From: Lepidodermella squamata
Taxonomy: Eukaryota > Animalia > Gastrotricha
DNA length: 64,000 bases
Assembly: GCA_047495785.1 (NCBI GenBank)
Contig: JBLDXI010000007.1
Span: 2,790,001-2,854,000, forward strand
Direction: 5' to 3'
Numbering within the stretch: the stretch's first letter is position 1; the number at the start of each line of letters is the position of its first letter. Positions 12,856 through 34,855 of the stretch are shown in pieces. Under the pieces are notes generated by a model. That model worked only from the letters and a program-made list of their open reading frames with translations, had not been told where the DNA came from and ran no database searches. The translations under genes and the position numbers were made by a program.

Positions 12856-13860
12856 TTAGAGGAGACGGCCAGCTCCAAGACCAACGAGGCCAGCGTTGCC
12901 GACGAGGCCAGCGCGGTTGAGGCCAAGACCGTTGACGCCGTTAACGCCATTGACACCGAGGAGACCAGCATTGCCAACGAAGCCGGCGTTGTTGACGAGG
13001 CCAGCGTTGCCGAGGAAGGCACCGTTGCCGACGAGGCCAGCGTTGCCAAGGAAGGCACCGTTGCCAACGAGGCCAGCATTGTTAACGCCAGCACCGAGGA
13101 AAGCGCCATTTCCGACGAGGCCGGCATTGTTGACGCCAGCACCGAGGAAAGCACCGTTGCCGACGAAGCCAGCGCGGTTGAGGCCGAGGCCATTGACGCC
13201 ATTGACGCCAACGAGGCCGGCGTTTCCGACGAGGCCAGCATTGCCGACGAAACCAGCATTGCCGACGAGGCCAGCGTTGCCGACGAGGCCAGCACCAAGA
13301 CCGAGGCCGTTGTTGGCAGCCTGCTGAGCACCCTGAGCACCCTGGGCGGCAGCCTGGTTGAAGCCCTGAGCACCAGCGGACTGCTGGGCACCCTGAGCGC
13401 CGGCAGCCTGGGCAGCAGCCTGCTGGGCAGCACCGGCGGCGGATCCCTGAGAGCCCTGGGCGCCCTGAGCACCTCCGTAGGCGAAGCCAGTGTCGAAGTC
13501 GCCGGCAGCCTGCTCGGCACCAGCGGAGGTGCGCTCAGAGGCGGCGAGGAGGGAAGCGGCGTGGTCGTAACGGCCAGCAGCCTGCTGGGCATCGGCGTGG
13601 GTGGCGCCCTGGCCGAAAGCTCCAGCGTGGTGAGATCCCTGGGAACCCTGAGCCTGTTGAGCAGCAGCAGCGGCAGCCTGGGCAGCGTGGCCGGCAGATC
13701 CAGCGGAAGCCTGACCACCCTGGGCGCCACCGTTAGCGAAGCCCTGGGAACCAGCGGCGGCGTTGGCAGCAGCAGCGGCATTGCCACCGAAGCCTCCGAT
13801 GGGGAGAACGCCGGCGTTGGCGACGGCGACTACGCCAAGAAGAACGGCAACCTTGAACAT
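12856..13860 (-). CDS. Secreted Gly/Ala/Asn/Gln-rich structural protein, paralog 1
   Basis: Signal peptide MFKVAVLLGVVAVANA, shared core HADAQQAAGRYDH..., GLVGNA/GNGAFL tail repeats, upstream TATA. Confidence 0.9.
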   Translation of the reverse strand: MFKVAVLLGVVAVANAGVLPIGGFGGNAAAAANAAAGSQGFANGGAQGGQASAGSAGHAAQAAAAAAQQAQGSQGSHHAGAFGQGATHADAQQAAGRYDHAASLLAASERTSAGAEQAAGDFDTGFAYGGAQGAQGSQGSAAGAAQQAAAQAAGAQGAQQSAGAQGFNQAAAQGAQGAQQAANNGLGLGAGLVGNAGLVGNAGFVGNAGLVGNAGLVGVNGVNGLGLNRAGFVGNGAFLGAGVNNAGLVGNGAFLGAGVNNAGLVGNGAFLGNAGLVGNGAFLGNAGLVNNAGFVGNAGLLGVNGVNGVNGLGLNRAGLVGNAGLVGLGAGRLL

Positions 13861-16090: not shown

Positions 16091-17035
16091 TTACCAGGCG
16101 TAGCGGGCGAAGCCGAGACCGCCGAGGTGACCGGCGCCATAGCCGCCGAGATGGCCGAGGTTGGCATTGCCGTAGCCGAGGCCGAAGCGACCAGCTCCGA
16201 GACCAGCGCCATAGCCGAAACCAGCACCGTGGCCGAAACCGTTTCCGAAGCCAAGACCAGCGCCGTAGCCGAAGCCAGCGCCATGGCCGAGACCGGCGCC
16301 ATAGCCAGCACCAAGACCAACACGGCCAGCGCCGAAACCAGCACCGTAACCGAGACCGTGACCAGCGAAGCCAGCGTTAGCACCACCAGCGAAGCCGGCA
16401 GCGTTGGCACCACCGAATCCACCATGGCCGTAGAAGACGGGGGCAGCGTGTTGCTGGACAGCGACTGGCTGGACGACAACGTTGGGCTGCTGCTGGACAG
16501 CCTGCTGGGCGACCTGGTGAGCACCCTGGGCGGCACCCTGGTTGAATCCGTGAGCACCAGCGGCATGGTGACCTCCCTGTTGGCCGGCAGCCTGGGCAGC
16601 GCCGAAGTGGCCGGCAGCAGCCTGGGATCCCTGAGAGCCTTGGGCGCCCTGGGCACCACCGTGGGCGTAGCCAGAGTCGAAGTCACCAGCAGCCTGTTCG
16701 GCGGCAGCAGAGGTGCGCTCAGAGGCAGCGAGGAGGGAAGCTCCGTGGTCGTAACGGCCAGCAGCCTGCTGGGCATCGGCATGGGTGGCGCCCTTTCCGT
16801 AGGCTCCAGCGTAGTGGGATCCCTGAGAGCCCTGAGCGTGATGGCCGTTGGCGCCAGCAGCCTGAGCGTGGTGACCGGCAGATCCAGCAGCAGCCTGGTT
16901 GGCATGGGCGCCGCCCTGGGAGGCAGCGTGGTGGCCGGCGTTTGCGGCAGCCGCGGCAGCATTGCTACCAGCGAATCCGCCGAAACTGGCGTTGGCGACG
17001 GCGAAAGCAGCGCAGACAACGGCGATCTTGAACAT
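16091..17035 (-). CDS. Secreted Gly/Ala/His-rich structural protein, paralog 2
   Basis: Start MFKIAVVCAAFAVANA at 17035 matches the paralog starts; conserved core; GYGAGLG/GHGAGFG tail. Confidence 0.9.
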   Translation of the reverse strand: MFKIAVVCAAFAVANASFGGFAGSNAAAAAANAGHHAASQGGAHANQAAAGSAGHHAQAAGANGHHAQGSQGSHYAGAYGKGATHADAQQAAGRYDHGASLLAASERTSAAAEQAAGDFDSGYAHGGAQGAQGSQGSQAAAGHFGAAQAAGQQGGHHAAGAHGFNQGAAQGAHQVAQQAVQQQPNVVVQPVAVQQHAAPVFYGHGGFGGANAAGFAGGANAGFAGHGLGYGAGFGAGRVGLGAGYGAGLGHGAGFGYGAGLGFGNGFGHGAGFGYGAGLGAGRFGLGYGNANLGHLGGYGAGHLGGLGFARYAW

Positions 17036-17083
17036 CTTTGTGACGTCTACAAGTGGATGGATAAAAGATTGAAAAAGTGAATG

Positions 17084-17117
17084 ACTGACGAATCCCTCTA
17101 ATCCGGTCGCTTTTATA
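17084..17117 (-). promoter_or_regulatory. TATA + initiator core promoter of paralog 2
   Basis: TATAAAA at 17117-17111 and TCAGT at 17088-17084, about 30 nt apart. Confidence 0.75.
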
Positions 17118-17827
17118 CGCTCAACCTTCAAAAACAACATGGACCGCGCGACGCTCCTTGCTAACCGCAGGGCCCTGTTATCTGAGTGCATTACCGTTTC
17201 CGAAATAAATTCCTCAGAAAATCAGAAACATTTTTTAATCTCATTTTATCGAAAGGTAGTCCCAACTAGAGCAAACTCGAAATTCTCTGCAATTCTCTGA
17301 TATTTTCCGATTTTTCGAACATCCCGCTGTTTTAACGGGGTTCTACGGTAGAGCGTGTTGTTTGACAAGGCCTTGTGACCATCTCCGCGCATAAACATAA
17401 ACGCACCAGCTTGTGATCGATGTTTTTTCAACGGTGGCGCTAATTAGTGCCATCTTACAGGCGAACGCTATTCATACGTTTTTTACTCATTTGCACTTGT
17501 ACACGCATGCATTTTTGCTACACACCGGCGATGGCAATCTTGCATCAATGTAAACAACACCGGCTATTTGTCAACATTTGAATAGTGAACGTCTTTGGAA
17601 TAAACATATTACACAGTACTTGCGAGTAAAAAAATTAAACAAATACGTAGCGCATTTTTATTGTTTATTATTTACTTTTTCGCGTAAAAATGTTACAAGG
17701 GTGACATAACATAAAAAGTTTGATTTTGAAGCATTTTGATTTTAATGGCCGAAGTAGAACTGCCTGGCATTGCCAAAGTTGTTGAAGTGACCTCCGCCAA
17801 GACCGAACCCTGAAAAAGTGGCCACTT

Positions 17828-18898
17828 TTATTGAAGATTAAGGCGTTGTAAGAAAGGCAAACCTCCAAGTCTGTTCAAACCGAGGCCCAGGCCAAGTTGT
17901 GCCCTGCCAAGCCCGAGATCGCCGACTGCGACGCGGCCATAGCCTGATCCGAATCTGCCTCCGAAGCCGCTGCCGAAGCCCGATCCGGTTCCAGCATTGA
18001 AACCACCGCCAAAACCTGAGTTTAGTCCCGACCCGATTCCAGCGTTGAATCCTCCGTTAAAACCCGACCCAACGGCAGAGTTGAAACCCCCTGAATTGAA
18101 ACCACCGCCAACTCCAGATCCAATTCCGTGACCAAATCCCCCGTTAGAAACTGATCCTACCCCTGCGTTAACCCCTGAGTTGAAACCACCACCAACTCCG
18201 GATCCGAATCCGTGACCGAATCCGCCTGCATAGTTACTACCGCCTACAGCAATAGGCTTGATGACTGAAGTGTGAAAAAAGAGTTTATACAAAGGCTATA
18301 CATATAGCAGTTGCTACCTACCGTACTGGGCCTGTTGTTGTTGGGGCAATTGCTGCTGTTGTTGCCGTGAAACGATCTGATAACCCTGATTCCCACCATG
18401 CGCCGCTCCAGAATGAGCCGCACCTTCCTGCCCAGCTGCCTCAGCTCCAGCAAACTTGCCAGCTGATGCTTTAGCGCCCTGAGAACCTTGAGCACCCTGT
18501 CCAGTGCCATAGGCGAAACCAGTGTCAAATCGTCCCCCTGAGTTCTCTCCAGCCGCCGAAGTTCGCTCCGAGGCTGATAGCAAGTTGGCGCTATGATCGT
18601 ATCGGCCGGCAGATTGTTCCGCATCAGCGTGAGTTCCGCCTCGTTTGTAAGCGCCTGAAAATTGCGAGCCTTGAGATCCTTCCGCTTGGTGAGCACCCTG
18701 GCCTGCGCCTTGGAAAGTCCCACCAGCAGACCCGGAAACAGCTTGACCCGCGTGAGCTCCAGCTGCCGATCCTGCATGGTTGCCAGCAAAGGCGTCTGCG
18801 GCGCTATTGCTACTGCCGCCTTGATGTAAGTTGATCGGGACTAAGTTTGCATTTGCCAAAGCAAGGGCAGCGAAGAAGGCTGTTGCTGTAATCATCAT
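17828..18898 (-). CDS. Secreted Gly-rich structural protein, divergent paralog 3; exons 18898-18322, 18264-17828
   Basis: Signal peptide and core THADAEQSAGRYDHSANLLSASERTSAAGENSGGRFDTG. A 57-nt GT-AG intron restores QQAQY-VIKPIAV, matching VVQPVAV in paralogs. GFNSG/GFGSG tail. Confidence 0.85.
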
Positions 18899-19629
18899 CT
18901 TCAATTTGTCAACAAATGATGCGAAATGATGCCACTGGGGGAAGAAGACCCATCACAACTTGTTTGCCCGAGATCTCAAGAGCCCTTGAGAACATTTCGC
19001 TCTTTAACGCCTAAGCCGATTAATTTTGACTTGACGGTGCCAAAATACGAAAGCTATCGGCTATTGGTAAAGAGTGACACAAAAGGCCAAGCCGGTGCAT
19101 CAGTATTGGCTGAAAGATGACTGCTGATATCTTAATATCGATTTGAATCCTCACATGAAAAGTTCACTTTTTTACGAGGTGATACGGTAATTATTTAGGT
19201 TCATTGTCGTCGGCCTTGCGCTAAAAACCCACTATGGAAGCTGTTAACAGCAGGCTGTTGCCGCCTGGAGTGGCATCTGTCATACGAGGCTACGTGCGTA
19301 AAAACAGACTACTCGTGCGTTGCGCAGCATTTTTTCGGTTGCACAAAAGTGAAGCGGAATTAAATTGTCCTTCAGCGTTTCCTTTTTTAAATGCAACAAA
19401 CACTCAAATGCAAAATCTGGCCCATCAATGCGAAAAATGATGCGTGGATGAGTTAAACTGGAGTTTTACAATTTTTGGCGCAAAAGCAACACGAATCCGT
19501 TGATCCTTCATGTACCAATTGCGACGAAAAAATAGGAATCTCGAGAATGCACTTGAAGTGAGGGAACAAAATCCAAATTAAAAGTTGCTTATTTCTAAGG
19601 CAACGTCATGCTTTTTAATTCCCGCTCTT

Positions 19630-21314
19630 TCAATACATATCATATTTTGGCCCAAGTGAAGTCTCCCGCATCGGTTTAGGATGATCGTCGAATTGGCAAA
19701 GTGTTCGCGGTAATAAGCGACGGGTAGGCACCAGCGAATAATGAGCAGCTGATTCACCAAATCCACTGAGACTAATAACTAATCGGTCCATTTTAGTAAG
19801 GAAGAGCCAATCGAGATAAGTCTTCGCTCCATCCATCCATAGTTCTTCCTCGCTTCTTCCATCAAGTTCAATTTTATCGATGTGAGAAATTTGACTACGA
19901 TCGGTAGTAATAATTTTGATTGTTTCCGACGAGCTCGCGATGAAGTCCGCCAAGTATAGCTGAAAATCGGCGTAGGCTTGCTCCGAATCAGCTGTAATAA
20001 ATATTGCGACACTTTGCCCCGCGAGATCAAGGAAGTTCAGGATTCGTTTAACCTCTTCAGCTTGACATCGCACGTCATCAGCTTTGTACTCAGCTATTTC
20101 GTCTAAAACTGAAAATTCGGTCCATACAATTCAAGTGGTTGGTTTATCAGTATTTGTTACATCTTAGTCTGGATATGCAGTGTCATAGTCCAACTACTTG
20201 TTGCTGGGTCGGTCGCGATAGTGGGGCTGGTCGGGTTGGTGGGTGTGATTTTTTTTCACACTATGTTAATCAATTGATAGAATCGCGTGCTGCCAAGCCC
20301 CATTGATCCCATTGATGCTATCATATCGAAAATCAGAGCAACACGTAGTTGGACTTTGACTCCGCAAAATCCGGCCTAAGATGTAACTGTTAACTTACGA
20401 AAGCTTCGGTGTTGGATACCAATTTTGATACAGTTCCTCCAGTAATCCATACCGACCGAAGTTGTGATGGTTTTTGCAAATAAGGCTCTCAGTCGTGAAT
20501 TCGGCCTTTCGAAGATCAGCCTTAAAGCTGCGGAGATTGCAATGTTAAAATCATAATTGAATCCAAGTAAGCCGGGGGAAAATGTCTCGAAATTGTCCTT
20601 GAAACCCTCGTTCCAAAGCACGCCGTCTAATCCAGCATGCCGATTTGACCATAGCTTCAAATATTTAAATCTCTCTGTTTCATTCAATAACGTCTCCCTC
20701 TGCATGAATGCAGAATAGTTTTCATTTAACAGTTCGTCATGATGTGATAACAGCTTGGTCCTGCTTTCGTTGTATGGTTCGGTGAAAGTTTGCCGGAATG
20801 TGGCAGCATCCACCTGGTAAAAGTGTTCGTTCACTTGAAAATAATCAGCAACATCACCAGGTTTATTCCATTCGAAGTTGAACACCCGATTCGAGCCAAT
20901 TGCGAGGTAGAGGGCGATGACAGAGCCCCTGAGACGATCCCCAAGGCCGTTGCAATTATGATGATCAGGCCTTAGGCAAATCCTGCGGCCTGGAGGTATT
21001 GCCGGATACATGAAATCGAAGCATGCAATATTTTGAGGCAATATGGATCGTTTACAAAACGAAGTTGCAAATTTAACATCATAGGTAGATTTCTCCTTGA
21101 ATTCAGCTGCCACTCGAGCTATGTAGTTTTCTTTGATGGACTTGGCAACAGCGATTGCCTGAGCTTGACGAGCTGATAGTCTGCGGATTTCAAAATCTGA
21201 AAACAGATCATCGTTGTCGCTAGTCGAGCTTTCCTTAACGTTGGTGTATAACAGGAGCAATAAACCTAAAACTGTGATGATAGCAAGATATTTCGTGGCA
21301 AGCTGGCTATGCAT
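19630..21314 (-). CDS. Type II membrane fucosyltransferase-like glycosyltransferase (GT-B, GT23/GT37/NodZ-like); exons 21314-20399, ~20102-19630
   Basis: N-terminal TM anchor and motifs NGLGDRLRG, KIGIQHR, IFITADS, LDWLFL...SLSGFG typical of the alpha-1,2/1,6/O-fucosyltransferase clan. GTAAGT donor with an in-phase acceptor. Confidence 0.75.
20182..20360. mobile_element. MITE-like element in the glycosyltransferase intron
   Basis: 24-bp inverted repeats (20182-20205 / 20337-20360, 2 mismatches); no clear TSD. Confidence 0.55.
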
Positions 21315-22040
21315 TGAACAATTGCCACATTGTGAAGGGGCTGTTATACCTGGGGAAGAGTAAAGAAACACGTAACGCTACATTCTCACCTCTTTTATTT
21401 ACAAATGTTCTTGGATCTATTGTTACTATTACTCGGCTCTTGGATGAACGCAAAAGAGGATCAAACATAAGGTCTAAGCAGTCTTAACACAATAGCGACC
21501 ATGTTGTGATCATTATATCTCATGTTCAGAGCTAGCCATGGTCTATTTCGGGGTGTATCAATACCACCAATAAAGAAGTCACCAATGCCACCAACGGCGG
21601 TTCTCATCTTTCATCTTTTAGCTTGACACCGTCTAGGGCAAGTACGAAATCATGTGTGAACGGTGGAGTTGTGTTGGCTATCTTCAATCCATTAGTGTTT
21701 TAACTGTTATTTACAAACAGGTATCCCAAGTGCCTCCAATCTTACAAGGTTAGATTGCTGCAAGGCTACGTTGGGATATCAACATCCCACATAATTTCTG
21801 GAAAATTCGTTAATAATGGCTACAACAGCCAAATGGGATTGGCAGTTCTCGAATTTTGGTTCGAGTCCATAATCCCCAGATGAGCAGACTTGCTTCAAGG
21901 TCACCCGTACTGAAAAAGAGGGCATGTTGGTGATATTCGACGGCAACAGACCAATCCTTAAAAATGAAGCAGAAAAAATGAAGCGAGTAACGATATTGAC
22001 ATTTTATCTTGAGTAACAGAACATCAACAGGTCACAAAAA

Positions 22041-23240
22041 ATGACAGTCATATTCCAAATTTTAATATTGTATCTTTTTGTCATCGAATCTATTTACGCA
22101 CCAGCCGCCCCAAAAGTGCCCGCCGCGAATGCCGTTATAGTACAACAGCGGTTATCTAACGACACCAAATGCGTAAGGATTCAGTCGAAATCGAAGCAAG
22201 AATATCTCAGGCTGGAATGCGACAGGATCCCGGAGGGAACTCCAATGACTGCTGGCGGAGGAAATTATATTTTTGAGGGGACTAAAGCGGTAGGCGATGG
22301 AATGCAAGACTTCTACGTTCTCTTAAACACAACGAGCAAGACGGCTCTCATCGAATCTGTCATGTCACGCGGGCGCTTTCTGCGGGTTGATTGCGCGACA
22401 TTGCGAATCAATTGCCAATCAGGTGTTGGCCGCAGTGAGACATTCAGTTACGAAACGAACTCTGATAACTCCTTATCTTTTTACTTTGGGGAGGGCACTT
22501 CAAAACGATATCTTACCGTTGGGAAAACCGTCTGCACGAAGAATTTAGCCACGCCTGGGCAAGCGGAGTCGTTCTTCTTGCGCAATGACTGCAAGCCGCC
22601 ACCACCTAAAACCACCACCGCAGCTCCCACTACTGCGAAAGCCGATTCTGTTGGTGCAGGCACAACCAAAGCTGGTAGCAGTAACGCGGGTGCGACCACG
22701 GCTAAGCCATCTGGCACGACATCTGGCACGACAGCAAAGGGATCTGATTCGGGCACCACGACTAAAGCTGGCGCAGCCACCACAAAACCGGGAGATGCTC
22801 CGCCAGCAACTACTGCAAAAGCGTCTGATACAACAACGACAAAAGCTGGACAAACCACTGCTAAGCCGGCGGATGCTGCGCAAACTACCAAGGCCCCTGA
22901 CTCCGCTGCTACAACTAAAGCCGCGGAAACTACAACTAAGGCTGGTGATGCCGCGACAACAACGACTGCCAAGGCCGGGTCAGAAACTACCACGACTAAG
23001 GCTGCCGATACTACAACCACCACGGCAAAAGCTGGCGAAACTACCACGACTAAGGCTGCCGCGGCTACAACCACCACAGCTAAGGCTGCCGATACCACAA
23101 CCACCACAGCTAAGGCGGTCGATACTACAACTACTACAGCTAAGGCTGCCGACACCACAACCACCACAACCACTACAACCACTACAACAACTAAAGCCAC
23201 TCAGGCTGCGCAAACCACTACCACAGCTAAAGCCGGCTAA
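22041..23240 (+). CDS. Secreted fascin-like beta-trefoil protein A with Thr/Ala/Lys mucin-like tail
   Basis: Intronless; signal peptide; YLRLEC, FLRVDC, INCQSGVGRSETF; about 210-aa tail of TTTTAKAAD-like repeats. Confidence 0.8.
   Translation: MTVIFQILILYLFVIESIYAPAAPKVPAANAVIVQQRLSNDTKCVRIQSKSKQEYLRLECDRIPEGTPMTAGGGNYIFEGTKAVGDGMQDFYVLLNTTSKTALIESVMSRGRFLRVDCATLRINCQSGVGRSETFSYETNSDNSLSFYFGEGTSKRYLTVGKTVCTKNLATPGQAESFFLRNDCKPPPPKTTTAAPTTAKADSVGAGTTKAGSSNAGATTAKPSGTTSGTTAKGSDSGTTTKAGAATTKPGDAPPATTAKASDTTTTKAGQTTAKPADAAQTTKAPDSAATTKAAETTTKAGDAATTTTAKAGSETTTTKAADTTTTTAKAGETTTTKAAAATTTTAKAADTTTTTAKAVDTTTTTAKAADTTTTTTTTTTTTTKATQAAQTTTTAKAG
22612..23237 (+). repeat. Coding tandem repeats (T)nAKA(A/G)D/E
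   Basis: Degenerate units of about 27-30 nt (e.g. actacaaccaccacagctaaggctgccgat). Confidence 0.9.
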
Positions 23241-23833
23241 ATGCCGCAGTGTGGCAGCTTACAAGTTACAAAATCCGAGTGGACTCCTTGTTATACTAAC
23301 TTTTATTTGAGGCTCTTGAAAGAATAAAAGTAATATAGGTAACTGCAACCTGCAACAAACTTGGGAAGCAACATTGCATTAAAACACATTTTTCCAGTCT
23401 GGCGAGACAAGTTGCACTTCCCTGAGTTTTTAAGCGATTATTTAAATGGGGAAGGCCAGACAAGTTAACAGTTGCCGGCTGTCGGTGTTCAGCATTGATT
23501 AGGAAAACTATTGAATATAAGTCAGAGTGAAATAATATTGCTTAAATTGTAGAGTTTGCCAAGTGAGTTCGTTGACCTGCTCATTTTTTTATTATTGATT
23601 GCACGAAAATTGGTGATGACTTAAAGAAGGAGAACAAATGTCGATCTCTGACTAATTATGGTGTAGAGTCTGTCGAATAACTCCGAAACTTTTTGGAGTA
23701 TTTAAGCAAGAACTCGAGCCCACGTTTCTTAGAAAACCTGCATGAAGTCGTGCAGATGCGTGGTTCAAAAGAAAACACCCTTTGTTGAGTCGTGGTTAAG
23801 CTGCAAGCGTGCTACTTCTCAAATTTTGCTCAA

Positions 23834-25087
23834 ATGCCAAGAATAGCCTTTATTCCATCCATATTAATTTTAAGCGTCTTATTTTCTCTAGTTCAATCTC
23901 AAGAAAAGGGTAAAATCTACGCTTTCGAATCAGCAGCTCATCGCGGTCGGTATTTGCGTCTCGATTGCGTTGGCTATAACGCCAATCTGCAACAAGGGTG
24001 GGGGCCATGGGAAAGGTTCTATATCATCCCTCGTCAGAACAATTCTCTGGCACTAGAATCCGTAGATAATCCTGGACGCTTTGTGACATCATCGTGTCCG
24101 AGTTATACATGTGGCCGGGGTGATTCACAATCACGCGATCAATTCGTACAGGAAACCAACGATGACGGAACAATTTCTTTCAGGCAGAGAACAACGGCAA
24201 TTTATCTTGGTGTTATGGGCGCAGAGAATTTCAACCAGTTTAGTTCCAGCGGCGGAGGTTACTCGGCTTGTCTGCTGGAGAAAACTATATTCGCTAAATT
24301 TTTTCTCACTGAAATTGGCACGGCTGCAATAACGGACTCCAACTCTACTTCACCTGGGCAGCTCATCGAACTCACTGAAAGACCAGGGTCATTTTTCGAA
24401 GCAGACTGCAGATCAGTCACTAAACCGGAAGGTGACGGCGGGGGTCGCTTTGGCATCTCAACGACTGTAAGTTCACTTAGTGAGTTCATCATGGCTAAAG
24501 ATGACGATGGCTTGTGGTCGATTCAAACGACCAGCCCTAAGGGTCGTTATCTTCGCGGAGATTGCAATAGCGCAACATCGCGATTAAGTGGGACTGTCAA
24601 CTGTCAGTATGGATTAGGGCCTTATGAGAAATTTGTTCGCGAATTCAATGCTGATGATGGATCTTACTCGTTCCGTTCTTACTCATTTAGTGCTTATATT
24701 GGTTCGGATGGTGTTAGCCTCAGGTGCAGAGCTAACAAAACTTCAACAGAAAGATTTTGTCTCCGAAACAGGCCGCAAGCAAATGATTCTGTTGAAGTTC
24801 CTTTTACGACAATCACCCGCAGCACCGCCTTCACCCCGACCCTTCTAACTCCTAGTACTACTGCATCAATCTCGACGAAATATGTTTTCCCAACAACAGC
24901 TGCTTCAGCTGCTGTGAAAAATGCTGAAGTTGTTGTTAGCGAAACAATGCCCATTTCTTCCACGGTCGAAACTGTTCGCAGAACAACAAAAGACAACAAC
25001 AGTTCAAAAAACTCTTCTGGTACTATTCATTCCTTTGTTGTTGCCCACATCTTAATTTGTTATTTTAAGAGAGCTATTGTGTCGTAA
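23834..25087 (+). CDS. Secreted, possibly GPI-anchored, double fascin-like beta-trefoil protein B
   Basis: Intronless; signal peptide from MPRIAF; repeats YLRLDC..NLQQGWGPWERF and YLRGDC..VNCQYGLGPYEKF; S/T-rich stalk; hydrophobic C-terminus. Confidence 0.8.
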   Translation: MPRIAFIPSILILSVLFSLVQSQEKGKIYAFESAAHRGRYLRLDCVGYNANLQQGWGPWERFYIIPRQNNSLALESVDNPGRFVTSSCPSYTCGRGDSQSRDQFVQETNDDGTISFRQRTTAIYLGVMGAENFNQFSSSGGGYSACLLEKTIFAKFFLTEIGTAAITDSNSTSPGQLIELTERPGSFFEADCRSVTKPEGDGGGRFGISTTVSSLSEFIMAKDDDGLWSIQTTSPKGRYLRGDCNSATSRLSGTVNCQYGLGPYEKFVREFNADDGSYSFRSYSFSAYIGSDGVSLRCRANKTSTERFCLRNRPQANDSVEVPFTTITRSTAFTPTLLTPSTTASISTKYVFPTTAASAAVKNAEVVVSETMPISSTVETVRRTTKDNNSSKNSSGTIHSFVVAHILICYFKRAIVS

Positions 25088-25180
25088 ATTAAAGAACAAG
25101 GAAATTGAACAAAAAGCCTATTATAGCTGGATAATTTCTCCAAGACAGCGTGGGTGCACTTTGAAAGACTTTAAAAAAAG

Positions 25181-26125
25181 ATGGACTCTTACATCCATTT
25201 GCTTTTCCTGTTGCAGCTTAATTTGCTGCTAATTTCAGTGACAGCGCTGAGTTTTGATGGTTCTAAAGTCTACTCTTTTGAATCCGGGGCTTATCGCCGT
25301 CGGTTTCTACGGGTTGAATGTGGCGTTGCTGCAAACCTACAAACTAGTGCAGGGCCGTGGGAACGATTCAAAATTACAACCAAAGCAAATGGCTTATCAA
25401 CTATTGAGTCTGAGTTCTTCACTGGTAACTACATTAGCATTGCAGGCTCCATTCAAAATCGGCGAATTGAGTGCAGTGATTGGTTGCCTGGTGATAACGA
25501 GCTGTTTGTGATCGAGAGAAATGCCGACGATACCTTTTCAATCAAAAATCGCGCGGCGAATTGCTATCTCGCTGCGTATGGAGGCGAAACCCAGGCTAAC
25601 CCAGGAACCCCAATCGGTTCTATAATATGCGCTGCTACTAAAACTCTCAACAGCAAATTTTTCATGCAAGAAGTTCCGATGTCGCCAACTTCGAGCCCTA
25701 CAACAACCAAAGTTCCCGAGCCTATTTACTTCGTGGAAAGTTTTGCGAAGAGGAACAACTTTCTTCAAGGCGATTGTGGCGCGGTGGTAAAGTATAACGG
25801 TGCCGGCGGCGGAAGGTTCTTTGTCTCTGATAAGCCGAGATACGATTTCTCGACCTTCATCGCTGAGCCGACTGATGACGGTCTATGGACTCTCCAACCT
25901 GTCAAAGCTAAAGGCCGATATCTTAGGATAGACTGCGGTGGAACGATCAATTGTCAGTTCGGTGTAGGGCCCTGGGAAAGGTTTCATCTCGAATTCAATG
26001 CTGAAGACGGAACATATTCTTTCAAATCGACTGATTACAACAAGTATCTTGGCATCACAGATTCCGGACTCGGCTGTAAACCTAACAGAACAAAAACTGA
26101 AAAATTCTTACTGAAACTCATTTAA
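25181..26125 (+). CDS. Secreted double fascin-like beta-trefoil protein C
   Basis: Intronless; signal peptide; NLQTSAGPWERF and YLRIDCGGTINCQFGVGPWERF; clear paralog of protein B without the stalk. Confidence 0.8.
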   Translation: MDSYIHLLFLLQLNLLLISVTALSFDGSKVYSFESGAYRRRFLRVECGVAANLQTSAGPWERFKITTKANGLSTIESEFFTGNYISIAGSIQNRRIECSDWLPGDNELFVIERNADDTFSIKNRAANCYLAAYGGETQANPGTPIGSIICAATKTLNSKFFMQEVPMSPTSSPTTTKVPEPIYFVESFAKRNNFLQGDCGAVVKYNGAGGGRFFVSDKPRYDFSTFIAEPTDDGLWTLQPVKAKGRYLRIDCGGTINCQFGVGPWERFHLEFNAEDGTYSFKSTDYNKYLGITDSGLGCKPNRTKTEKFLLKLI

Positions 26126-26394
26126 AAACAAGTCATTTGTTAAGCATTCATTGACATCTTTATTCAACTTGAATTTTCCGTTCAAGACAACTTATGAAAA
26201 TATTATTTGACTTTTCCGAAACTTGTTGTCACCCGGAGCTGGCCGAGGTCACATATTGAAGACTTTACGAGAAGGCGGCGAATCATAAGACCACTACCAA
26301 ATCATGCTGTCAGAAGGCTAAGAAAGAGTTGAGCGTGCGAGGTGAGGTAGAGTGCTGCAGGTAACGGGGGTGGCTTGCTGGACTGTTTCTTCGT

Positions 26395-27717
26395 TTAGTA
26401 GAAGAAGCCACGGCCATAACCGAGGTTGTTGCCACCGAAAGCCCATCCGTTGCGGCCAAGACCGCCGAGGAAACCACCGAAACCGGCATTGTGGCCAGCG
26501 TTGACGTTACCAGTGTTGAAGCCATTGAAACCAGCACCGAAGCCAAGGCCGAGGCCAAGACCGTTGACGCCGTTGGCACCACCGAAGCCCTGAGCACCAC
26601 CAAGGTGAACACCGTTGGCAGCACCGAAGCCACCGAAACCAGCGCGCTGGCCAGCGTTGACGTTAGCAGCGTTGAATCCACCGAATTGGGAACCAGCTCC
26701 GTAGCCAAGACCAAGGCCGCCGAGGCCAAGACCGTTGACACCGTTGGCAGCACCGAAGCCCTGGGCGGCACCGAGGTTGACACCGTTAGCAGCACCGAAG
26801 CCACCGAATCCACCGAAACCAGCGCGCTGGCCAGCGTTGACGTTGGCGGATTGGAGACCACCGAATTGGGCACCAGCAGCACCAAGACCAGCACCATAGC
26901 CGAGGCCAAGACCAAGACCGTTGACACCGTTGGCGGCACCGAATCCCTGGGAAGCACCGAGGCTGACACCGTTGGAAGCACCGAATCCACCGAATCCACC
27001 GACGCGGCCAAGACCGAGACCGAGACCAGCGCCATAGACTGGGACACCACCGAAGAGACCAGCGCCATATCCCCAACCACCATGGGCAGCGATGGGCTGC
27101 TGGACGGCAACGGGCTGCTGGACGGCGACGGGCTGGACAACAACCTGGGGCTGTTGGCGGACGGCCTGTTGGGCAGCCTGCTGGGCACCCTGGGCGGCAG
27201 CCTGGTTGAATCCGTGAGCACCAGCGGCCTGCTGGGCACCCTGTTGACCGGCAGCCTGGGCAGCAGCCTGCTGGGCAGCGGCAGCCTGGGATCCCTGAGA
27301 GCCCTGGGCGCCCTGGGCAGCGCCGTGGGCGTAGCCAGTGTCGAAGTCACCAGCAGACTGCTCAGCGGCAGCCGAGGTGCGCTCAGAGGCGGCGAGGAGG
27401 GAAGCAGCGTGGTCGTAACGGCCAGCAGCCTGCTGGGCATCAGCGTGGGTGGCGCCCTGGCCGAAAGCTCCGGCGTGGTTAGATCCCTGGGATCCCTGGG
27501 CGTGGTGGCCATTGGCGCCAGCAGCCTGGGCGTGGTGACCGGCAGATCCAGCGGAAGCCTGGTGGCCATTGGCGCCACCGTTCGAAGCAGCCTGGGCAGC
27601 GTTGGCAGCATTGGCAGCAGCGCCACCAAATCCACCGCCAAAACCGCCGAAACCGCCGATGAATCCGCTGGCGTTAGCCGCGGCAACAACACCGAGGAGA
27701 ACAGCAAGCTTGAACAT
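26395..27717 (-). CDS. Secreted Gly/Ala/Asn-rich structural protein, paralog 4
   Basis: Signal peptide, conserved core, GFGAANGVN(L/G) repeats, ends GRGFFY. Confidence 0.9.
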   Translation of the reverse strand: MFKLAVLLGVVAAANASGFIGGFGGFGGGFGGAAANAANAAQAASNGGANGHQASAGSAGHHAQAAGANGHHAQGSQGSNHAGAFGQGATHADAQQAAGRYDHAASLLAASERTSAAAEQSAGDFDTGYAHGAAQGAQGSQGSQAAAAQQAAAQAAGQQGAQQAAGAHGFNQAAAQGAQQAAQQAVRQQPQVVVQPVAVQQPVAVQQPIAAHGGWGYGAGLFGGVPVYGAGLGLGLGRVGGFGGFGASNGVSLGASQGFGAANGVNGLGLGLGYGAGLGAAGAQFGGLQSANVNAGQRAGFGGFGGFGAANGVNLGAAQGFGAANGVNGLGLGGLGLGYGAGSQFGGFNAANVNAGQRAGFGGFGAANGVHLGGAQGFGGANGVNGLGLGLGFGAGFNGFNTGNVNAGHNAGFGGFLGGLGRNGWAFGGNNLGYGRGFFY

Positions 27718-30656: not shown

Positions 30657-31868
30657 TTACAAGAAGAATCCGCGGCCATAACCGAGGTTGTTGCCGCCGA
30701 AAGCCCAGCCTTGACGACCGAGACCGCCGAAGCCAAGACCGTTTCCGTAACCAGCGCCATAGCCGCCGAGGCCAGCGCCATAGCCGAGGCCAAGACCGTT
30801 GACGCCGTTGGCGCCACCGAAGCCCTGAGCAGCACCGAGGTTGACACCGTTGGCAGCACCGAAGCCACCGAAGCCAGAGCGCTGACCAGCGTTGACGTTG
30901 GCACCCTGGAATCCGCCGAACTGGGAACCAGCTCCATAACCAAGACCAAGACCGCCGAGGCCAAGACCGTTGACGCCGTTGGCGGCACCGAAGCCCTGGG
31001 CAGCACCGAGGTTGACACCGTTGGCAGCACCGAATCCACCGAATCCACCGACGCGCTGGCCAGCGTTGACGTTAGCACCGCTAAGACCGCCGAACTGGGC
31101 ACCAGCAGCACCAAGACCAGCACCATAGCCGAGGCCAAGACCGTTGACACCGTTGGCAGCACCGAAGCCCTGGGCGGCACCAATGTTGACACCGTTGGCA
31201 GCACCGTAGTTACCACCATAGGCGGGGACTCCACCGAAGAGACCAGCGCCATATCCCCAACCGCCATGGGCAGCGACGGGCTGGACGGCGATCTGCTGAA
31301 CCTGGGGCTGGTAAGCCTGCTGGGCAGCCTGCTGAGCACCCTGGGCGCCAGCCTGGTTGAATCCCTGAGCACCAGCGGCCTGCTGGGCACCCTGTTGACC
31401 GGCAGCCTGGGCAGCAGCCTGCTGGGCAGCGGCAGCCTGGGATCCCTGGGAACCCTGGGCGCCCTGAGCACCACCGTAGGCGAATCCGTTGTCGTAGTCA
31501 CCAGCGGACTGCTCAGCAGCAGCCGAGGTGCGCTCAGAGGCGGCGAGGAGGGAAGCAGCGTGGTCGTAACGGCCAGCAGCCTGCTGGGCATCAGCGTGCT
31601 GAGCACCCTGACCGTAGGCACCGGCGTACTGGGATCCCTGGGAACCCTGAGCGTGATGACCGTTGGCACCAGCAGCCTGAGCCTGGTTGCCGGCAGCGCC
31701 GTTGGAGGCCTGACCACCCTGAGCGAAACCGTTGGAGGCAGCCTGGGCAGCAGCGTTGGCGGCGTTGTTGGCAGCAGAACCACCGAAGTTGTTGAGGCCG
31801 AAGCCACCGACGAATCCGCTGGCGTTAGCGGCGGCGACGACGCCGAGAAGAATGGCAACCTTGTACAT
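30657..31868 (-). CDS. Secreted Gly/Ala/Asn-rich structural protein, paralog 5
   Basis: Signal peptide, conserved core, tail nearly identical to paralog 4, ends GRGFFL. Confidence 0.9.
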   Translation of the reverse strand: MYKVAILLGVVAAANASGFVGGFGLNNFGGSAANNAANAAAQAASNGFAQGGQASNGAAGNQAQAAGANGHHAQGSQGSQYAGAYGQGAQHADAQQAAGRYDHAASLLAASERTSAAAEQSAGDYDNGFAYGGAQGAQGSQGSQAAAAQQAAAQAAGQQGAQQAAGAQGFNQAGAQGAQQAAQQAYQPQVQQIAVQPVAAHGGWGYGAGLFGGVPAYGGNYGAANGVNIGAAQGFGAANGVNGLGLGYGAGLGAAGAQFGGLSGANVNAGQRVGGFGGFGAANGVNLGAAQGFGAANGVNGLGLGGLGLGYGAGSQFGGFQGANVNAGQRSGFGGFGAANGVNLGAAQGFGGANGVNGLGLGYGAGLGGYGAGYGNGLGFGGLGRQGWAFGGNNLGYGRGFFL

Positions 31869-31948: not shown

Positions 31949-33813
31949 GCCAACGCCAGACTGCTGAATCTACTACCCGCAGTGTAACCGAATATCATGT
32001 TATGTGTTTTGTCACCGGTGCACTTTTCCCAACTCGATTTTCACCACAATGTCCCAGCCCATCGATCGGGAACCCTTGCATCAGAGCTCCGGGCGTCCTA
32101 TAACCCTGCTAGGGAGGTCTCTATCAAATTTTTGAAGGTCGAAGTTTTCGACAGGGTACTAGGTGTTTTAACGAGTGGCTACGGTTGTCCAGACTTTGTC
32201 GTCGTTTTTGCGCGCTCTGCATGGCAAAAAACGCGATGGTCGAAGATAACAACAACTTAACGTGGCGCATGTGGCCGGCCACACCAATAAAGGTGCTGGC
32301 GTGAGCTCGCCGGTTGCCGGCCTCCGAGGGCCCTCGTGCGGCCACCATGTTTCGCGCCTTGTATTTGCATATATAACATATAACCTCCAATATTATTATT
32401 TCAAACCCACCATCGGCGTACACGCGCATAAACACGTTTTTTTGCATATGTTGATAGGCTTCGGCACGCGCTACACGGCCCGGTGCTGCTTGACTCTGCC
32501 GCGGCCATTACGTTAGTGTTAAGCGGCCACGGCGATTAGGAAAATTGCCGTAATACAAATTATACCTAGAATTTTGTCCTTCAGCAGCTTTACATTGTTT
32601 AAACCCCGGTTATATGACGCTTATCTTGTTAAAATTAAAGTATCACGCTCTGCTTACGTGTGTTGTTTTAAGCCGGATGAAGCATAATAAAAAAATTGAC
32701 CGACATTGCGTTCGCTTTTTTGTCAAATAATGGTTTATTTTATTTCTCATGAAAAATAAAGCACTGGGAACAGATCGCGAAAATTGTAATAAATTGTCGA
32801 TCAGTTCAGGCAAATTGAAGTGTGTCGATTCGACCTCCGATTCGATATAGGCCTTGCTCGCGCATTTTGAGGTGTTATCTTTTACTCTCTCCGGAATTTC
32901 GGAAAGTTATTCACCTTTTTTCATTTCAAGGTTAGCTTCATTTCAGTGGGCGACCCTAAAATTTGGGGAGAATAAAAAACAGCCTTGCCTTTTTTGCTGG
33001 AAAAAATTTAATCATTGACTCAAATTTTTAATTCAATTTTTTCATTTGTTAGCAATTTTTTGCTTGATTTAGGTTAAACTTTGTTTTTCTTTCTGGTCAA
33101 ATCTTGGGTTCTCTCCAAGAGCGGCTTATTTTCACGGCGTGCGAAAGCTGGGATTAAGGTGACCGCTATACCGATAATATCCCTCGCTGAGCCTCGGGGA
33201 TTAGCTTCAAAGAGGTTAAAACATCAAACATTCAGCTCCTTTTGGGTTGGCACGACAAACACCATAGAAAATTAGAAAAATACCTGGATTCAAGCTTGAA
33301 CATAATAATATGCATATAAAGCAGGTTCACCTTTTTTACCGATAATTCAAATTTCTTGGAAAATCAACTCAAATGAAACCGAAGGGTTAAAATGTTCTAG
33401 AATTGTGGAGTGATATGGATTATTAGGCTCTTAAACAGTTTCAGTTGAAACCAAAAATGGTGGGAAAATTTGATTCATTTACATTCATTTTTCTCGATTT
33501 CATTGGATATTATTGTGTTATTAAAATTTCGAAAAATAAATCGCCTCAAGTTCCCAAGTCCAACGTCCTCCATCCGGAAAGGCTTCGGCTCGGAGACAAA
33601 AACGGAACAAGTATTTTGAAAAATTCATTGCCTTTTTATTTTTAGCGATGTTTTTTCAACACCGCCGATCTTCGATCCGAAATCTAGGCTACTCTTACAT
33701 AGTTTGGAAAACGAATCAACGTTGGTGAAATATTTCAAACGGGCTACGATAGGACTTTGAGTAAATAATGTTCTTCTCAGGCAGTGATAGCAGGGTTTGA
33801 GAATAGCGGCTGC

Positions 33814-34855
33814 TTAACCGAGGAAGGCGCCGTTGCCAACAAGGCCGGCGTTTCCGAGGAAGGCACCGTTGCCGACGAGGCCAGCGTTGCCAGCGAAGCC
33901 AGCGCGGTTGAAGCCAAGACCGTTGGCGCCGTTGACGCCGAGGAGACCAGCGTTGCCGAGGAAGGCGTTGTTGCCGAGGAAGGCACCGTTGTTGACGCCA
34001 GCGCCGAGGAAAGCGCCGTTGCCAGCGAAGCCAGCGTGGTTAAGACCGAGGCCATTGACGCCATTGACGCCAGCGAGGCCAGCGTTGCCGCCGAGGAAGG
34101 CACCGTTGCCGTAGCCATAGCCGAGGTTGGCACCTCCGAATCCGAGGTGGCCAGCGCCGAGGTTGGCAGCGCCATAGCCGAGACCAGCGCCATAGCCGAG
34201 GCCAAGACCGTTGGCACCGACGAGGCCAGCACCAAGACCGAAACCGTTGTTGGCAGCGTTGGCAGACTGGGCGGCGCCGTTGGAGGCAGCCTGGTTGAAT
34301 CCGTTGGCACCAGCGGACTGCTGGGCACCCTGTTGGCCGGCAGCGTTGGCAGCAGCCTGGTTGGCAGCAGCGGCGGCGGATCCCTGAGAGCCCTGGGCGC
34401 CTTGAGCACCACCGTGGGCGAAGCCAGTGTCGTAGTTGCCAGCGGCCTGCTCGGCACCAGCGGAGGTGCGCTCAGAGGCGGCGAGGAGGGAAGCGGCGTG
34501 GTCGTAACGACCAGCAGCCTGGTTGGCATCAGCGTGCTGGGCACCCTGGCCGAAAGCGGCAGCCTGCTGAGATCCCTGGGAACCCTGTTCGCCGAAAATG
34601 TCTTAAAAAAATCCGATTTTTCTATCGAATTTGTCTCACCTGAGCCTGGTTGGCGGCAGCAGCGTTGGCAGCAGCCTGGTGGCCGCTGGCGGCGCTGGCG
34701 GCGTTGCCAAAGTTGGCACCACCGTTGGAAGCGGCGTTGGAACCGAAGTTGGAACCGAAGTTTCCGAAGCTTCCACCGAATCCGCCGAATCCTCCGAGGG
34801 GGAGACCGGCCTGGGCGACGGCGAGAACAGCGGCGAGAACGGCGACCTTGTACAT
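33814..34855 (-). CDS. Secreted Gly/Ala/Asn-rich structural protein, paralog 6; exons 34855-34640, 34584-33814
   Basis: Signal peptide MYKVAVLAAVLAVAQA. A 55-nt GTGAGA..AACAG intron restores AQ-GSQGS; conserved core; GNGAFL tail; in-frame TAA at 33816-33814. Confidence 0.88.

Follow-up and report, generated by a model that had tools for sequence, protein, structure and literature searches.

The three neighbouring genes g1, g2 and g3 of the gastrotrich Lepidodermella squamata raise the question of how an animal came to encode secreted-type beta-trefoil proteins whose nearest relatives appear to be bacterial, and what these proteins do. A preliminary description of the window (the whole stretch of 64,000 nucleotides analysed here) had taken them for a microbe-derived, fascin-like domain that was domesticated and triplicated. 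The explanation that we favour, at a probability of roughly 0.6, is that g1–g3 are real, expressed paralogues, that their products would be extracellular glycan-binding trefoils, and that the trefoil module would ultimately be of bacterial ancestry.

The three genes are single-exon neighbours, all on the + strand. The g1 CDS (399 aa, ORF 22041–23240) lies in a single-exon mRNA (22019–23342) running from the 5′ end of RNA contig X3 to a poly(A) site, where an RNA-like contig has a loose end at 23342 and AATAAA stands at 23323–23328. The full ORF of g2 spans 23792–25087, and the Met preceding its signal-peptide-like segment is at 23834, yielding a CDS of 417 aa (23834–25087) that is also recognised by its identity to g3 and by the family HMM described below. 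The g3 CDS (314 aa, 25181–26125) is identified by its ORF, a Pfam RicinB_lectin_2 match and an AF2 model. RNA-like contigs covered 23965–25063 in g2 and 25164–26216 in g3; across all three genes they were colinear with the genomic DNA, which makes the genes intronless and bears out the tandem, intronless arrangement first reported. In run X2, which is RNA by the program's guess only and whose contig depth is a poor gauge of expression, coverage was confined to genes and over g1 extended from 22100 to 23310, with none upstream. The independent DNA run X1, which carries SNPs relative to the window, covered 21127–26659 evenly at a depth of about 78–100, its contigs joining upstream DNA to g1, linking g2 with g3, and running from g3 into the Gly-rich gene downstream. 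GC3 and codon use of g1–g3 were inside the host range, and the listed coding differences (n = 33; 21 synonymous, 12 not) gave a pN/pS of about 0.18. Thus, g1–g3 are real, expressed animal genes that are physically part of host DNA.

Pfam identified a fascin and an activin-type receptor as animal genes near g1–g3 in the window, and from ORFs read by eye we take two further neighbours to be CNOT3-like and TAF1-like, which places animal genes on both sides. Bacterial contamination or a chimeric assembly, the latter a danger that the preliminary description had itself named, is suggested by nothing but the bacterial character of the best matches and is very improbable, indeed close to refuted, given the X1 contigs that span genes and flanks at equal depth, the poly(A) tail and AATAAA of g1, the animal flanks, the putative eukaryotic signal peptides and mucin tails, and an identity of merely about 25–40% between g1–g3 and any bacterial protein. 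The surroundings had been called intron-rich; the immediate neighbourhood is not, since the Gly-rich genes flanking g1–g3 are single-exon too. g1–g3 are embedded in a cluster of genes for secreted, structural-type Gly/Ala-rich proteins, at least six in number and expressed very highly.

Read by eye, each of the three proteins begins with a hydrophobic, signal-peptide-like segment and contains 6–10 Cys, which suggests the secreted, Cys-bearing type originally proposed, unlike cytosolic animal fascin. In g1, a putative signal peptide (residues 1–20) precedes the only trefoil, a degenerate one at about residues 41–186 (22161–22598), and a mucin-like, Thr/Ala-rich tail (213 aa, of which 38% are Thr and 25% Ala) with 30-nt tandem repeats. 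In g2, the putative signal peptide (23834–23899) is followed by an N-trefoil (23900–24346), a C-trefoil (24347–24781), a Ser/Thr-rich stalk (24782 to about 25027) and a hydrophobic C-terminal segment (25028–25084) that may be a GPI signal or membrane anchor. In g3, a putative signal peptide (25181–25252), an N-trefoil (25253–25690) and a C-trefoil (25706–26122) make up the protein, with no tail after the C-trefoil. The AF2 model of g3 (pLDDT 86) contained two trefoils, at residues 29–166 and 181–314, and that of g1 (pLDDT 75) gave beta-trefoil matches at TMt 0.75–0.79; the models and their structural matches support the beta-trefoil assignment of the preliminary description, with two predicted trefoils in g3 and one in g1. 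The g3 model matched many trefoils at VIA Z of about 18–19, a score at which CBMs tie with FGFs, toxin components and other classes, and ricin-type two-trefoil proteins were among the matches in a shape search with the whole model.

The reported repeat unit was present in all three proteins, as YLRIDC..INCQFGVGPWERF in g3, YLRGDC..VNCQYGLGPYEKF in g2 and FLRVDC..INCQSGVGRSETF in g1. A trefoil of the family to which it leads has three repeats of LRxDG...NCQxGxGPWExF, whereas g2 and g3 have one canonical unit per trefoil (N-alpha and C-beta). WExF with a nearby Arg, a CBM92-type motif, occurs once per trefoil in these two proteins, as WERF at 24008–24019 in g2 and at 25358–25369 and 25973–25984 in g3, and as YEKF at 24623–24634 in the g2 C-trefoil, where Trp is replaced by Tyr. 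g1 has no canonical unit and no aromatic residue at the Trp position, which reads SETF (22434–22445). g2 and g3 share 38% identity across about 300 aa (E 1e-60) and g1 matches g3 locally (E 2e-9); the genes did multiply by duplication, as first supposed. The tree joins the two N-trefoils of g2 and g3 (100/98) and their two C-trefoils (100/99), showing that a two-trefoil ancestor came first and was later duplicated into g2 and g3. g1 has kept one degenerate trefoil and has gained its mucin-like Thr/Ala tail.

In an exhaustive profile search of 1.84 billion representative proteins, 302 matches reached E ≤ 1e-3, 72 passed E ≤ 1e-10 and the best scored 1.3e-29, with the repeat unit common to the family matches; the unit is thus the signature of a real family. 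The listed named members were all bacterial except one sponge protein, the three of the top ten matches that were looked up (P0002, P0007 and P0010) lay on bacterial-type contigs, and 92 family loci were found in bacterial genomes, the family ranging over Actinomycetota, Bacteroidota, Pseudomonadota, Acidobacteriota and others. A family HMM built without the window sequences matched all five window domains (g2 C-trefoil 2e-23, g3 C-trefoil 4e-20, g2 N-trefoil 7e-17, g3 N-trefoil 9e-15, g1 trefoil 8e-10). Judged by sequence, g1–g3 are members of a large family of bacterial trefoils for which NCBI and UniRef use the name 'fascin domain-containing protein'. Single- and multi-trefoil examples occur in Nannocystis punicea (P0183), Embleya (P0226), Rhizobium/Agrobacterium (P0241) and Thalassospira (P0209); they have the same fold and the same unit, S.xFPxVYLRxDG...GGGxVNCQxGxGPWExF, and profiles match in both directions. 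The bacterial trefoils carry three near-identical units each, whereas those of g2 and g3 carry one canonical unit; the G of the bacterial LRxDG is Cys in the window proteins, which, unlike the bacterial ones, start with putative signal peptides of the eukaryotic kind and, in g1 and g2, carry a mucin or Ser/Thr tail. Bacterial modules of the family are often fused to astacin, papain-like proteases, tyrosinase and other enzymes. Pfam assigned CBM42/AbfB to 30 of 55 family members, RicinB_lectin_2 to 17 and Fascin to none; the family is without a Pfam model of its own, CBM42/AbfB being nearest by sequence.

Fascin itself is a cytosolic, actin-bundling protein of about 490 aa with four trefoils. 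The host has a true fascin gene on the – strand (37149–40491) with at least three exons (37149–37988, 38567–39316 and 39997–40491), in which Pfam Fascin (PF06268) matched at 4e-14 and 8e-11; the preliminary description was right about its presence, but the distance is 11–14 kb downstream of g1–g3 and not 10 kb. Pfam Fascin did not match g1–g3 at E ≤ 1, nor did tblastn of g1–g3 find the host fascin exons at E ≤ 1, and the family HMM had no significant match in these exons. The resemblance of g1–g3 to animal fascin consists of the beta-trefoil fold and, in profile comparison, a weak likeness to trefoil 1 of human fascin (E 0.016 with a g2+g3 profile, 9e-7 with a wider family profile), set against four tandem cytosolic trefoils in fascin and one or two behind a putative signal peptide here. 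The label 'fascin-like' thus holds at the superfamily level only, while the asserted likeness to bacterial proteins, far above that to the nearby animal fascin, is well borne out. That g1–g3 are divergent local copies of the host fascin gene, as proximity, the common fold and the weak match to human fascin trefoil 1 might suggest, is scarcely credible when Pfam Fascin, tblastn and the family HMM all fail to connect them and matches to the bacterial-type unit reach E 1e-29; fascin duplicates are effectively refuted as their source. Actin binding by g1–g3 is also unlikely for proteins of the secreted type.

We propose that g1–g3 encode extracellular, lectin-like proteins that bind glycans. The WExF and Arg combination suggests this by analogy with CBM92, described as 'bacterial fascin-like domains' that bind beta-1,6/1,3-glucans (PMC11039641; PDB 7ZOH, 7ZOI and 7ZON), in which WExF closes each subdomain with an Arg nearby and the sugar is contacted by Trp and Glu; a termite is the only animal mentioned there as having CBM92 (PMC11039641). 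CBM92-B superposed on the g3 N-trefoil with a Z of 18.5 (rmsd 1.7 Å over 124 residues, 17% identity), a score that ties with unrelated trefoils. The solved CBM92 chains 7ZOH, 7ZOI and 7ZON were not retrieved by profile A3 (E ≤ 1) or A4 (E ≤ 10), and because the family profile misses them, the WExF parallel may not hold for g1–g3. CBM92 is mostly found in Bacteroidota, typically joined to glycoside hydrolases, and has only WExF and the fold in common with the g1–g3 family; its ligand specificity is not transferable to g1–g3.

The Pfam assignments of the family likewise suggest glycan binding, as do the enzyme fusions of the bacterial modules, which are what a targeting module would show. CBM42/AbfB, an arabinofuranose-binding trefoil (PF05270; PDB 3KMV and 3AKF), is the best natural sequence neighbour of the family (3KMV, E 4e-5 with the family profile), but barely matches g1–g3 themselves (g2, E 0.24). 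RicinB_lectin_2 (PF14200) matched g3 residues 62–145 at 42.1 bits (curated cut-off 25.6; E 1.5e-10), and g1 and g2 did not match this model; ricin-type lectins have a QxW motif in place of the WExF of the g1–g3 family. To our knowledge, WExF is not a feature of CBM42. Based on the architecture, g3 would be soluble and bind at two places, each of its trefoils having an intact Arg...Trp-Glu-x-Phe site, and g2 would present a g3-type module on a Ser/Thr stalk, anchored through its hydrophobic C-terminus. g1 would be a mucin, its trefoil deprived of the aromatic site. They probably bind or cross-link a polysaccharide, in the extracellular matrix or on microbes. The motif is lost in two of the three subdomains of each g2 and g3 trefoil and everywhere in g1, which counts against glycan binding.

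Beta-trefoils elsewhere inhibit proteases, act as cytokines or bind proteins, and the structural matches tie at Z 18–19 across all of these classes. It is conceivable, though unlikely, that g1–g3 are secreted non-lectins whose trefoil is a protein-binding or structural module (in matrix, cuticle or egg coat with the Gly-rich proteins), a protease inhibitor or a signalling ligand. The erosion of WExF, the position of the genes inside the cluster of secreted Gly/Ala-rich genes, and the FGFs and toxin components that match at the same Z as CBMs would fit such a role. Yet a complete Arg...NCQ...WExF unit is kept in each trefoil of both g2 and g3 despite their 38% identity, which suggests glycan binding, and the sequence-nearest families, CBM42 and RicinB_lectin_2, are sugar binders, CBM92 being linked through motif and fold.

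We infer the bacterial ancestry of the module from the taxonomic distribution of the family and not from a resolved tree. A bacterial origin is plausible because the nearest relatives are bacterial "fascin-like" modules. Two histories have to be weighed. In one, which we hold only tentatively, g1–g3 descend vertically from a trefoil family that is ancient in eukaryotes or animals, together with the sponge and P0155-type genes, mostly lost elsewhere and evolving fast here, with any transfer far older. The sponge Ephydatia muelleri encodes members of the same family (P0210 and neighbours), also three in tandem and with introns; the close relatives P0219 and P0244 lie on large eukaryote-like contigs, and the two-trefoil protein P0155 is on an mRNA-like contig. 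In a careful tree, the window domains grouped with the second trefoils of P0008, P0011 and P0155 (no taxon assigned) at 96/87, and an AU test did not reject a single clade of window and sponge-type sequences (p 0.19). Against this, the 96/87 group unites the longest, most degenerate branches, so that long-branch attraction is likely; within it the tree program flags another long-branch join, of the g1 trefoil with the g2 and g3 C-trefoils. Vertical descent also demands loss in nearly all sampled animals, and the Ephydatia proteins, unlike g1–g3, consist of one trefoil in which all three units are intact, have an acidic N-terminus and no signal peptide, and form a separate short-branched clade.

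In the other history, to which we give somewhat less than even odds, the lineage of this very animal took up a bacterial gene directly by horizontal transfer; on domestication the gene acquired a signal peptide, Cys and mucin tails, and it was then triplicated in place. The family is overwhelmingly bacterial, the best matches with context checked are on bacterial contigs, and the genes are single-exon and in tandem. Because no match better than E 1e-30 occurred among the 1.84 billion representatives, there is no close animal orthologue on record. But the longest branches of the tree are those of the five window domains, with no bacterial sister group or donor clade resolved, the AU test allows a common clade with sponge-type eukaryotic genes, and sponge-type single-trefoil proteins score 84–88 bits with the window profile (Ephydatia 86), inside the 64–105 bits spanned by single-trefoil proteins from bacteria or metagenomes. 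The composition of g1–g3 is fully host-like, and intronlessness is weak evidence for transfer, since the host genes next to g1–g3 also have just one exon. What stands of the proposed microbe-derived domain is a mostly bacterial family for which the search found no close animal orthologue; the tree names no donor, and sponge and eukaryote-like homologues exist.

A fuller scenario, which we consider doubtful, is that the animal lineage captured a bacterial WExF-type carbohydrate-binding trefoil and rebuilt it as a soluble two-site lectin, a stalked, membrane-tethered form and a mucin, which recognise or cross-link a polysaccharide such as a microbial beta-glucan or matrix glycan. If true, this would be among very few animal uses of a bacterial module class, the module being otherwise almost confined to bacteria; if confirmed, a lineage-restricted secreted beta-trefoil lectin-like family would join the invertebrate repertoire. 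The findings are of use to work on how glycans are recognised and how genes pass into small invertebrates, and overturn nothing. They also draw attention to a large and uncharacterised family of bacterial trefoils that has three-fold WExF units and occurs in fusions with proteases, tyrosinases and other enzymes; by keeping exactly one unit each, the animal g2 and g3 trefoils point to the site that matters.

We interpret the three adjacent plus-strand genes g1, g2 and g3 most readily as coding for a new group of secreted, lectin-like trefoil proteins restricted to this lineage. Their ORFs occupy 22041–23240 (g1, 399 aa), 23792–25087 (g2, 417 aa from the Met at 23834 that precedes the signal peptide) and 25181–26125 (g3, 314 aa), and a whole-window tblastn with the three proteins matched g1, g2 and g3 only. 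g2 and g3 are paralogues (38% identity over ~300 residues, E = 1e-60), and g3 has a local match in g1 (E = 2e-9). The preliminary description had called the products secreted and Cys-bearing; judged by sequence, all three have hydrophobic signal-peptide-like N-termini (MTVIFQILILYLFVIESIYA, MPRIAFIPSILILSVLFSLVQS and MDSYIHLLFLLQLNLLLISVTALS in g1, g2 and g3, respectively), with 6, 10 and 8 Cys in the same order. g1 has a tail of 213 residues (38% Thr, 25% Ala) that consists partly of 30-nt tandem repeats at the DNA level. The g2 stalk is rich in Ser and Thr and includes several N-glycosylation sequons; the protein finishes with a short hydrophobic stretch, HSFVVAHILICYFKRAIVS, that may act as a GPI signal or anchor it in the membrane. 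The g2–g3 tandem is very compact: 93 nt lie between the g2 stop codon and the g3 start codon (25087–25181), ATTAAA is found at 25088–25093, and the g3 RNA contig begins at ~25164. Rfam gave no match across the whole window.

A word-index protein search with g3 alone returned no match, and we therefore ran an exhaustive profile search with g2 and g3. This yielded 302 matches at E ≤ 1e-3; 72 of them reached E ≤ 1e-10, and no E value fell under 1e-30. The family trefoil is built of three near-identical units of ~48 residues, with the consensus S.xFPxVYLRMDGxGVTxxxxxGGGxVNCQFGxGPWEKFxL among the matches, exactly the repeat unit described earlier. Three of the top matches were on contigs with bacterial gene content, and named members from a second search (NCBI/UniRef) came from Nannocystis, Embleya, Micromonospora, Streptomyces, Rhizobium/Agrobacterium and Thalassospira, where they carry the label 'fascin domain-containing protein'. 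A scan of bacterial genomes, one per species, with a pattern from a 10-row alignment found 92 loci, mostly in Actinomycetota, with others in Bacteroidota, Pseudomonadota, Acidobacteriota, Planctomycetota, Cyanobacteria and Verrucomicrobiota; their identity to the g3 C-trefoil was 26–48%, mostly 28–40%. Fusion partners of the module in bacteria are tyrosinase, metallophosphatase, LamG and PASTA domains and three kinds of protease: astacin, papain-like (C1) and C70. The bacterial matches P0007, P0166, P0189, P0157, P0158, P0004, P0005 and others fall in this trefoil family without a Pfam or NCBIfam model, and the JGI label on its bacterial members ('phospholipase C') is often wrong.

Pfam has no model dedicated to the family, and NCBIfam has none for g1–g3 or for the bacterial members. 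In Pfam, g3 matched RicinB_lectin_2 over the cut-off (1.5e-10) and DUF7910 under it, g2 matched AbfB only (E = 0.24), and g1 had no match. Pfam contacts among 55 family members were with AbfB/CBM42 in 30, RicinB_lectin_2 in 17 and Fascin in none. The Pfam Fascin model also gave no match to g1–g3 at E ≤ 1; its score on the exons of the animal's own fascin gene (37149–40491, minus strand) was 4e-14. A family profile made without the window sequences picked up every one of the five window domains (2e-23 to 8e-10) and nothing significant in the host fascin exons, bearing out the proposal that the genes resemble bacterial fascin-domain proteins more than the animal fascin. That g1–g3 are copies of host fascin was rejected on this result and on the lack of a tblastn match. 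The term 'fascin-like' is valid as a superfamily-level label and as a database name, but g1–g3 are not fascins. Among solved structures, the family profile matched designed Symfoils and, at 4e-5, CBM42 (3KMV). It also matched fascin trefoil 1, at 9e-7 when two-trefoil and at 0.009 when single-trefoil in design. An exact-sequence search for g3 in public assemblies gave no match, and an Atlas feature search returned a generic trefoil result only.

The AlphaFold2 model of g3, built with 68 aligned sequences (pLDDT 86), contains two 12-stranded trefoils, residues 29–166 and 181–314, and as a prediction the trefoil fold of g3 is certain. Foldseek and VIA-align gave two-trefoil matches to HA33, mosquitocidal toxin lectin domains and fascin, and single-trefoil matches to Symfoil, FGF, Tpp80Aa1 and CBM92-B. 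All of these trefoil families tie at Z ~18–19, so that structure does not reveal the subfamily. The g1 domain was modelled as a looser trefoil (pLDDT 75).

CBM92 proteins are trefoils in which each subdomain carries WExF with an Arg close by, and beta-1,6-glucan is bound at three sites through Trp and Glu (PMC11039641). The g1–g3 family carries the same WExF and Arg signature, but its profile never retrieves solved CBM92 chains. Membership in CBM92 was thus rejected on sequence, and we keep CBM92 as a working analogy rather than as the family. When aligned to the family consensus, the g2 and g3 trefoils retain exactly one full unit each, all on the plus strand: WERF at 25358–25369 in the alpha subdomain of the g3 N-trefoil, WERF at 25973–25984 in the beta subdomain of the g3 C-trefoil, WERF at 24008–24019 in the alpha subdomain of the g2 N-trefoil, and YEKF, with Trp replaced by Tyr, at 24623–24634 in the beta subdomain of the g2 C-trefoil. 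The corresponding position of g1 reads SETF, and the aromatic residue has therefore been lost. In the arrangement we propose, g3 would be a soluble putative lectin with two binding sites, g2 would present a g3-type module at the cell surface on a glycosylated stalk, and g1 would be a mucin whose trefoil probably no longer binds canonically. A role in extracellular material is as plausible as one in immune recognition.

We consider it probable (roughly 0.7) that the trefoil module is ultimately bacterial: the family is broad and diverse in bacteria, and no close animal orthologue was found in a collection of 15 billion proteins. Several observations speak against so simple a history. The sponge Ephydatia muelleri has an intron-containing tandem of three single-trefoil homologues (CM110744.1, locus L005; 3726–4795, 8001–9119 and 10395–11448), with every trefoil within one exon and a guanylate kinase gene adjoining. 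Close relatives of the sponge proteins, P0219 and P0244, are on large contigs in ENA assemblies that look eukaryotic from their fragmentary gene calls and Ras fragments, and two-trefoil proteins of the P0155 type are on mRNA-like contigs. Neither a quick tree (128 rows) nor a careful one (87 rows) yielded a bacterial sister group for the window domains, and an AU test did not reject their placement with the sponge-type clade (p = 0.19). The taxonomic score comparison suggested earlier (an 'alien index') is not decisive, because the window-profile scores of sponge-type single trefoils (84–88 bits; Ephydatia protein, 86) fall inside the range of bacterial or metagenomic ones (64–105 bits). Intronlessness, originally taken as a foreign sign, is no such mark, since neighbouring host genes are single-exon as well. 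Horizontal acquisition of g1–g3 is accordingly plausible but unproven, and that the module entered this animal's own lineage directly seems somewhat doubtful.

The window domains formed the longest branches in both trees. The pairing of g2N with g3N (100/98) and of g2C with g3C (100/99) indicates that a two-trefoil gene predates the g2/g3 duplication. In P0008, P0011 and P0155 the second trefoil is degenerate, and the window domains grouped with these second trefoils (96/87); this grouping unites the longest branches, and could therefore stem from long-branch attraction. The tree program's own long-branch warning concerned the join of the g1 domain with g2C and g3C. P0008, P0011, P0017, P0155 and P0156 come from short contigs of environmental or transcriptome origin; they are two-trefoil proteins of ~300 aa that lack a signal peptide and have a canonical first and a degenerate second trefoil. 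Locus L006 has the appearance of a eukaryotic mRNA.

Read contigs were compared over 21100–27099. The depth of an independent DNA run (X1) was ~78–100, the same in genes and intergenic DNA, as for genomic DNA; its many single-base differences from the window indicate another haplotype or individual. X1 contigs join the upstream spacer to g1 (21698–22822), g2 to g3 (23981–25683) and g3 to the downstream Gly-rich gene (25736–26440). An RNA-like run (X2) had zero depth at 21300–22099 and 23700–23899 and almost none at 23500–23699; it reached ~110–280 on g1, ~9–20 on g2 and ~13–44 on g3. In a further run (X3), one contig begins at 22019 and another finishes in an A run at 23342, 14 nt beyond AATAAA at 23323–23328. 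No joints were listed within the trefoil-coding parts of g1–g3, and the sole listed joint inside coding sequence was in the repetitive g1 tail. The colinear contigs, the A-run end and the absence of trefoil joints show that the g1 mRNA is polyadenylated without being spliced and that g2 and g3 transcription is colinear with the DNA, which together with the ORFs upholds the description of three tandem intronless genes. A g2 3' intron suspected at an RNA contig end (25063) found no support, as the site lacks a GT and no joint was listed.

GC3 (0.38–0.52) and codon use of g1–g3 are inside the range of neighbouring host genes. X1 differs from the window at 33 listed coding sites, a partial sample; 21 of these differences are synonymous and 12 nonsynonymous, so that pN/pS is roughly 0.18, a sign of constraint. 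Contamination or a chimeric assembly, the latter named at the outset as a possible refutation, is very unlikely given the contigs bridging genes and flanks at even depth, the transcripts, the host-like codon use and the constraint. Animal genes flank g1–g3 on either side: Pfam identified fascin at 37–40 kb and an activin-type receptor kinase at 44–46 kb, and ORFs recognised by eye are presumably CNOT3- and COPS7-like (3–5 kb) and TAF1-like (51–63 kb). None of the tools marked any part of the window as resembling human sequence.

g1–g3 lie among at least six clustered minus-strand genes, all single-exon, for secreted proteins rich in Gly, Ala and Gln (12856–13860, 16091–17191, 17828–18904, 26395–27717, 30657–31868 and ~33777–34544). 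After a common N-terminal block (…AGRYDHAASLLAASERTSAAAEQ…GAQGSQGS…), these proteins continue in GFGG/GLGLGYGAG repeats, and they gave no Pfam match; in the Atlas, a Gly-rich neighbour showed weak (0.80) likeness to arthropod Gly-rich cuticle proteins. One of the genes is expressed at extreme levels: X2 depth on the Gly-rich neighbour of g3 was enormous, with a contig depth of ~150,000 for the copy at 26395–27717. Upstream of g1, a minus-strand ORF of 331 aa (20376–21371) with an N-terminal membrane anchor had no Pfam match. Its CNGLGDRLRG stretch resembles what we take to be a fucosyltransferase-type glycosyltransferase motif, and its position beside the mucin-like g1 may not be due to chance. 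The activin/BMP-type receptor kinase is a single plus-strand ORF of 458 aa (44305–45681) with 27–28% identity to fish BMPR1A, and a word search with it, which scored the 8000 candidates with the most words in common, gave just two matches at E ≤ 1e-20; the host lineage appears to evolve fast.
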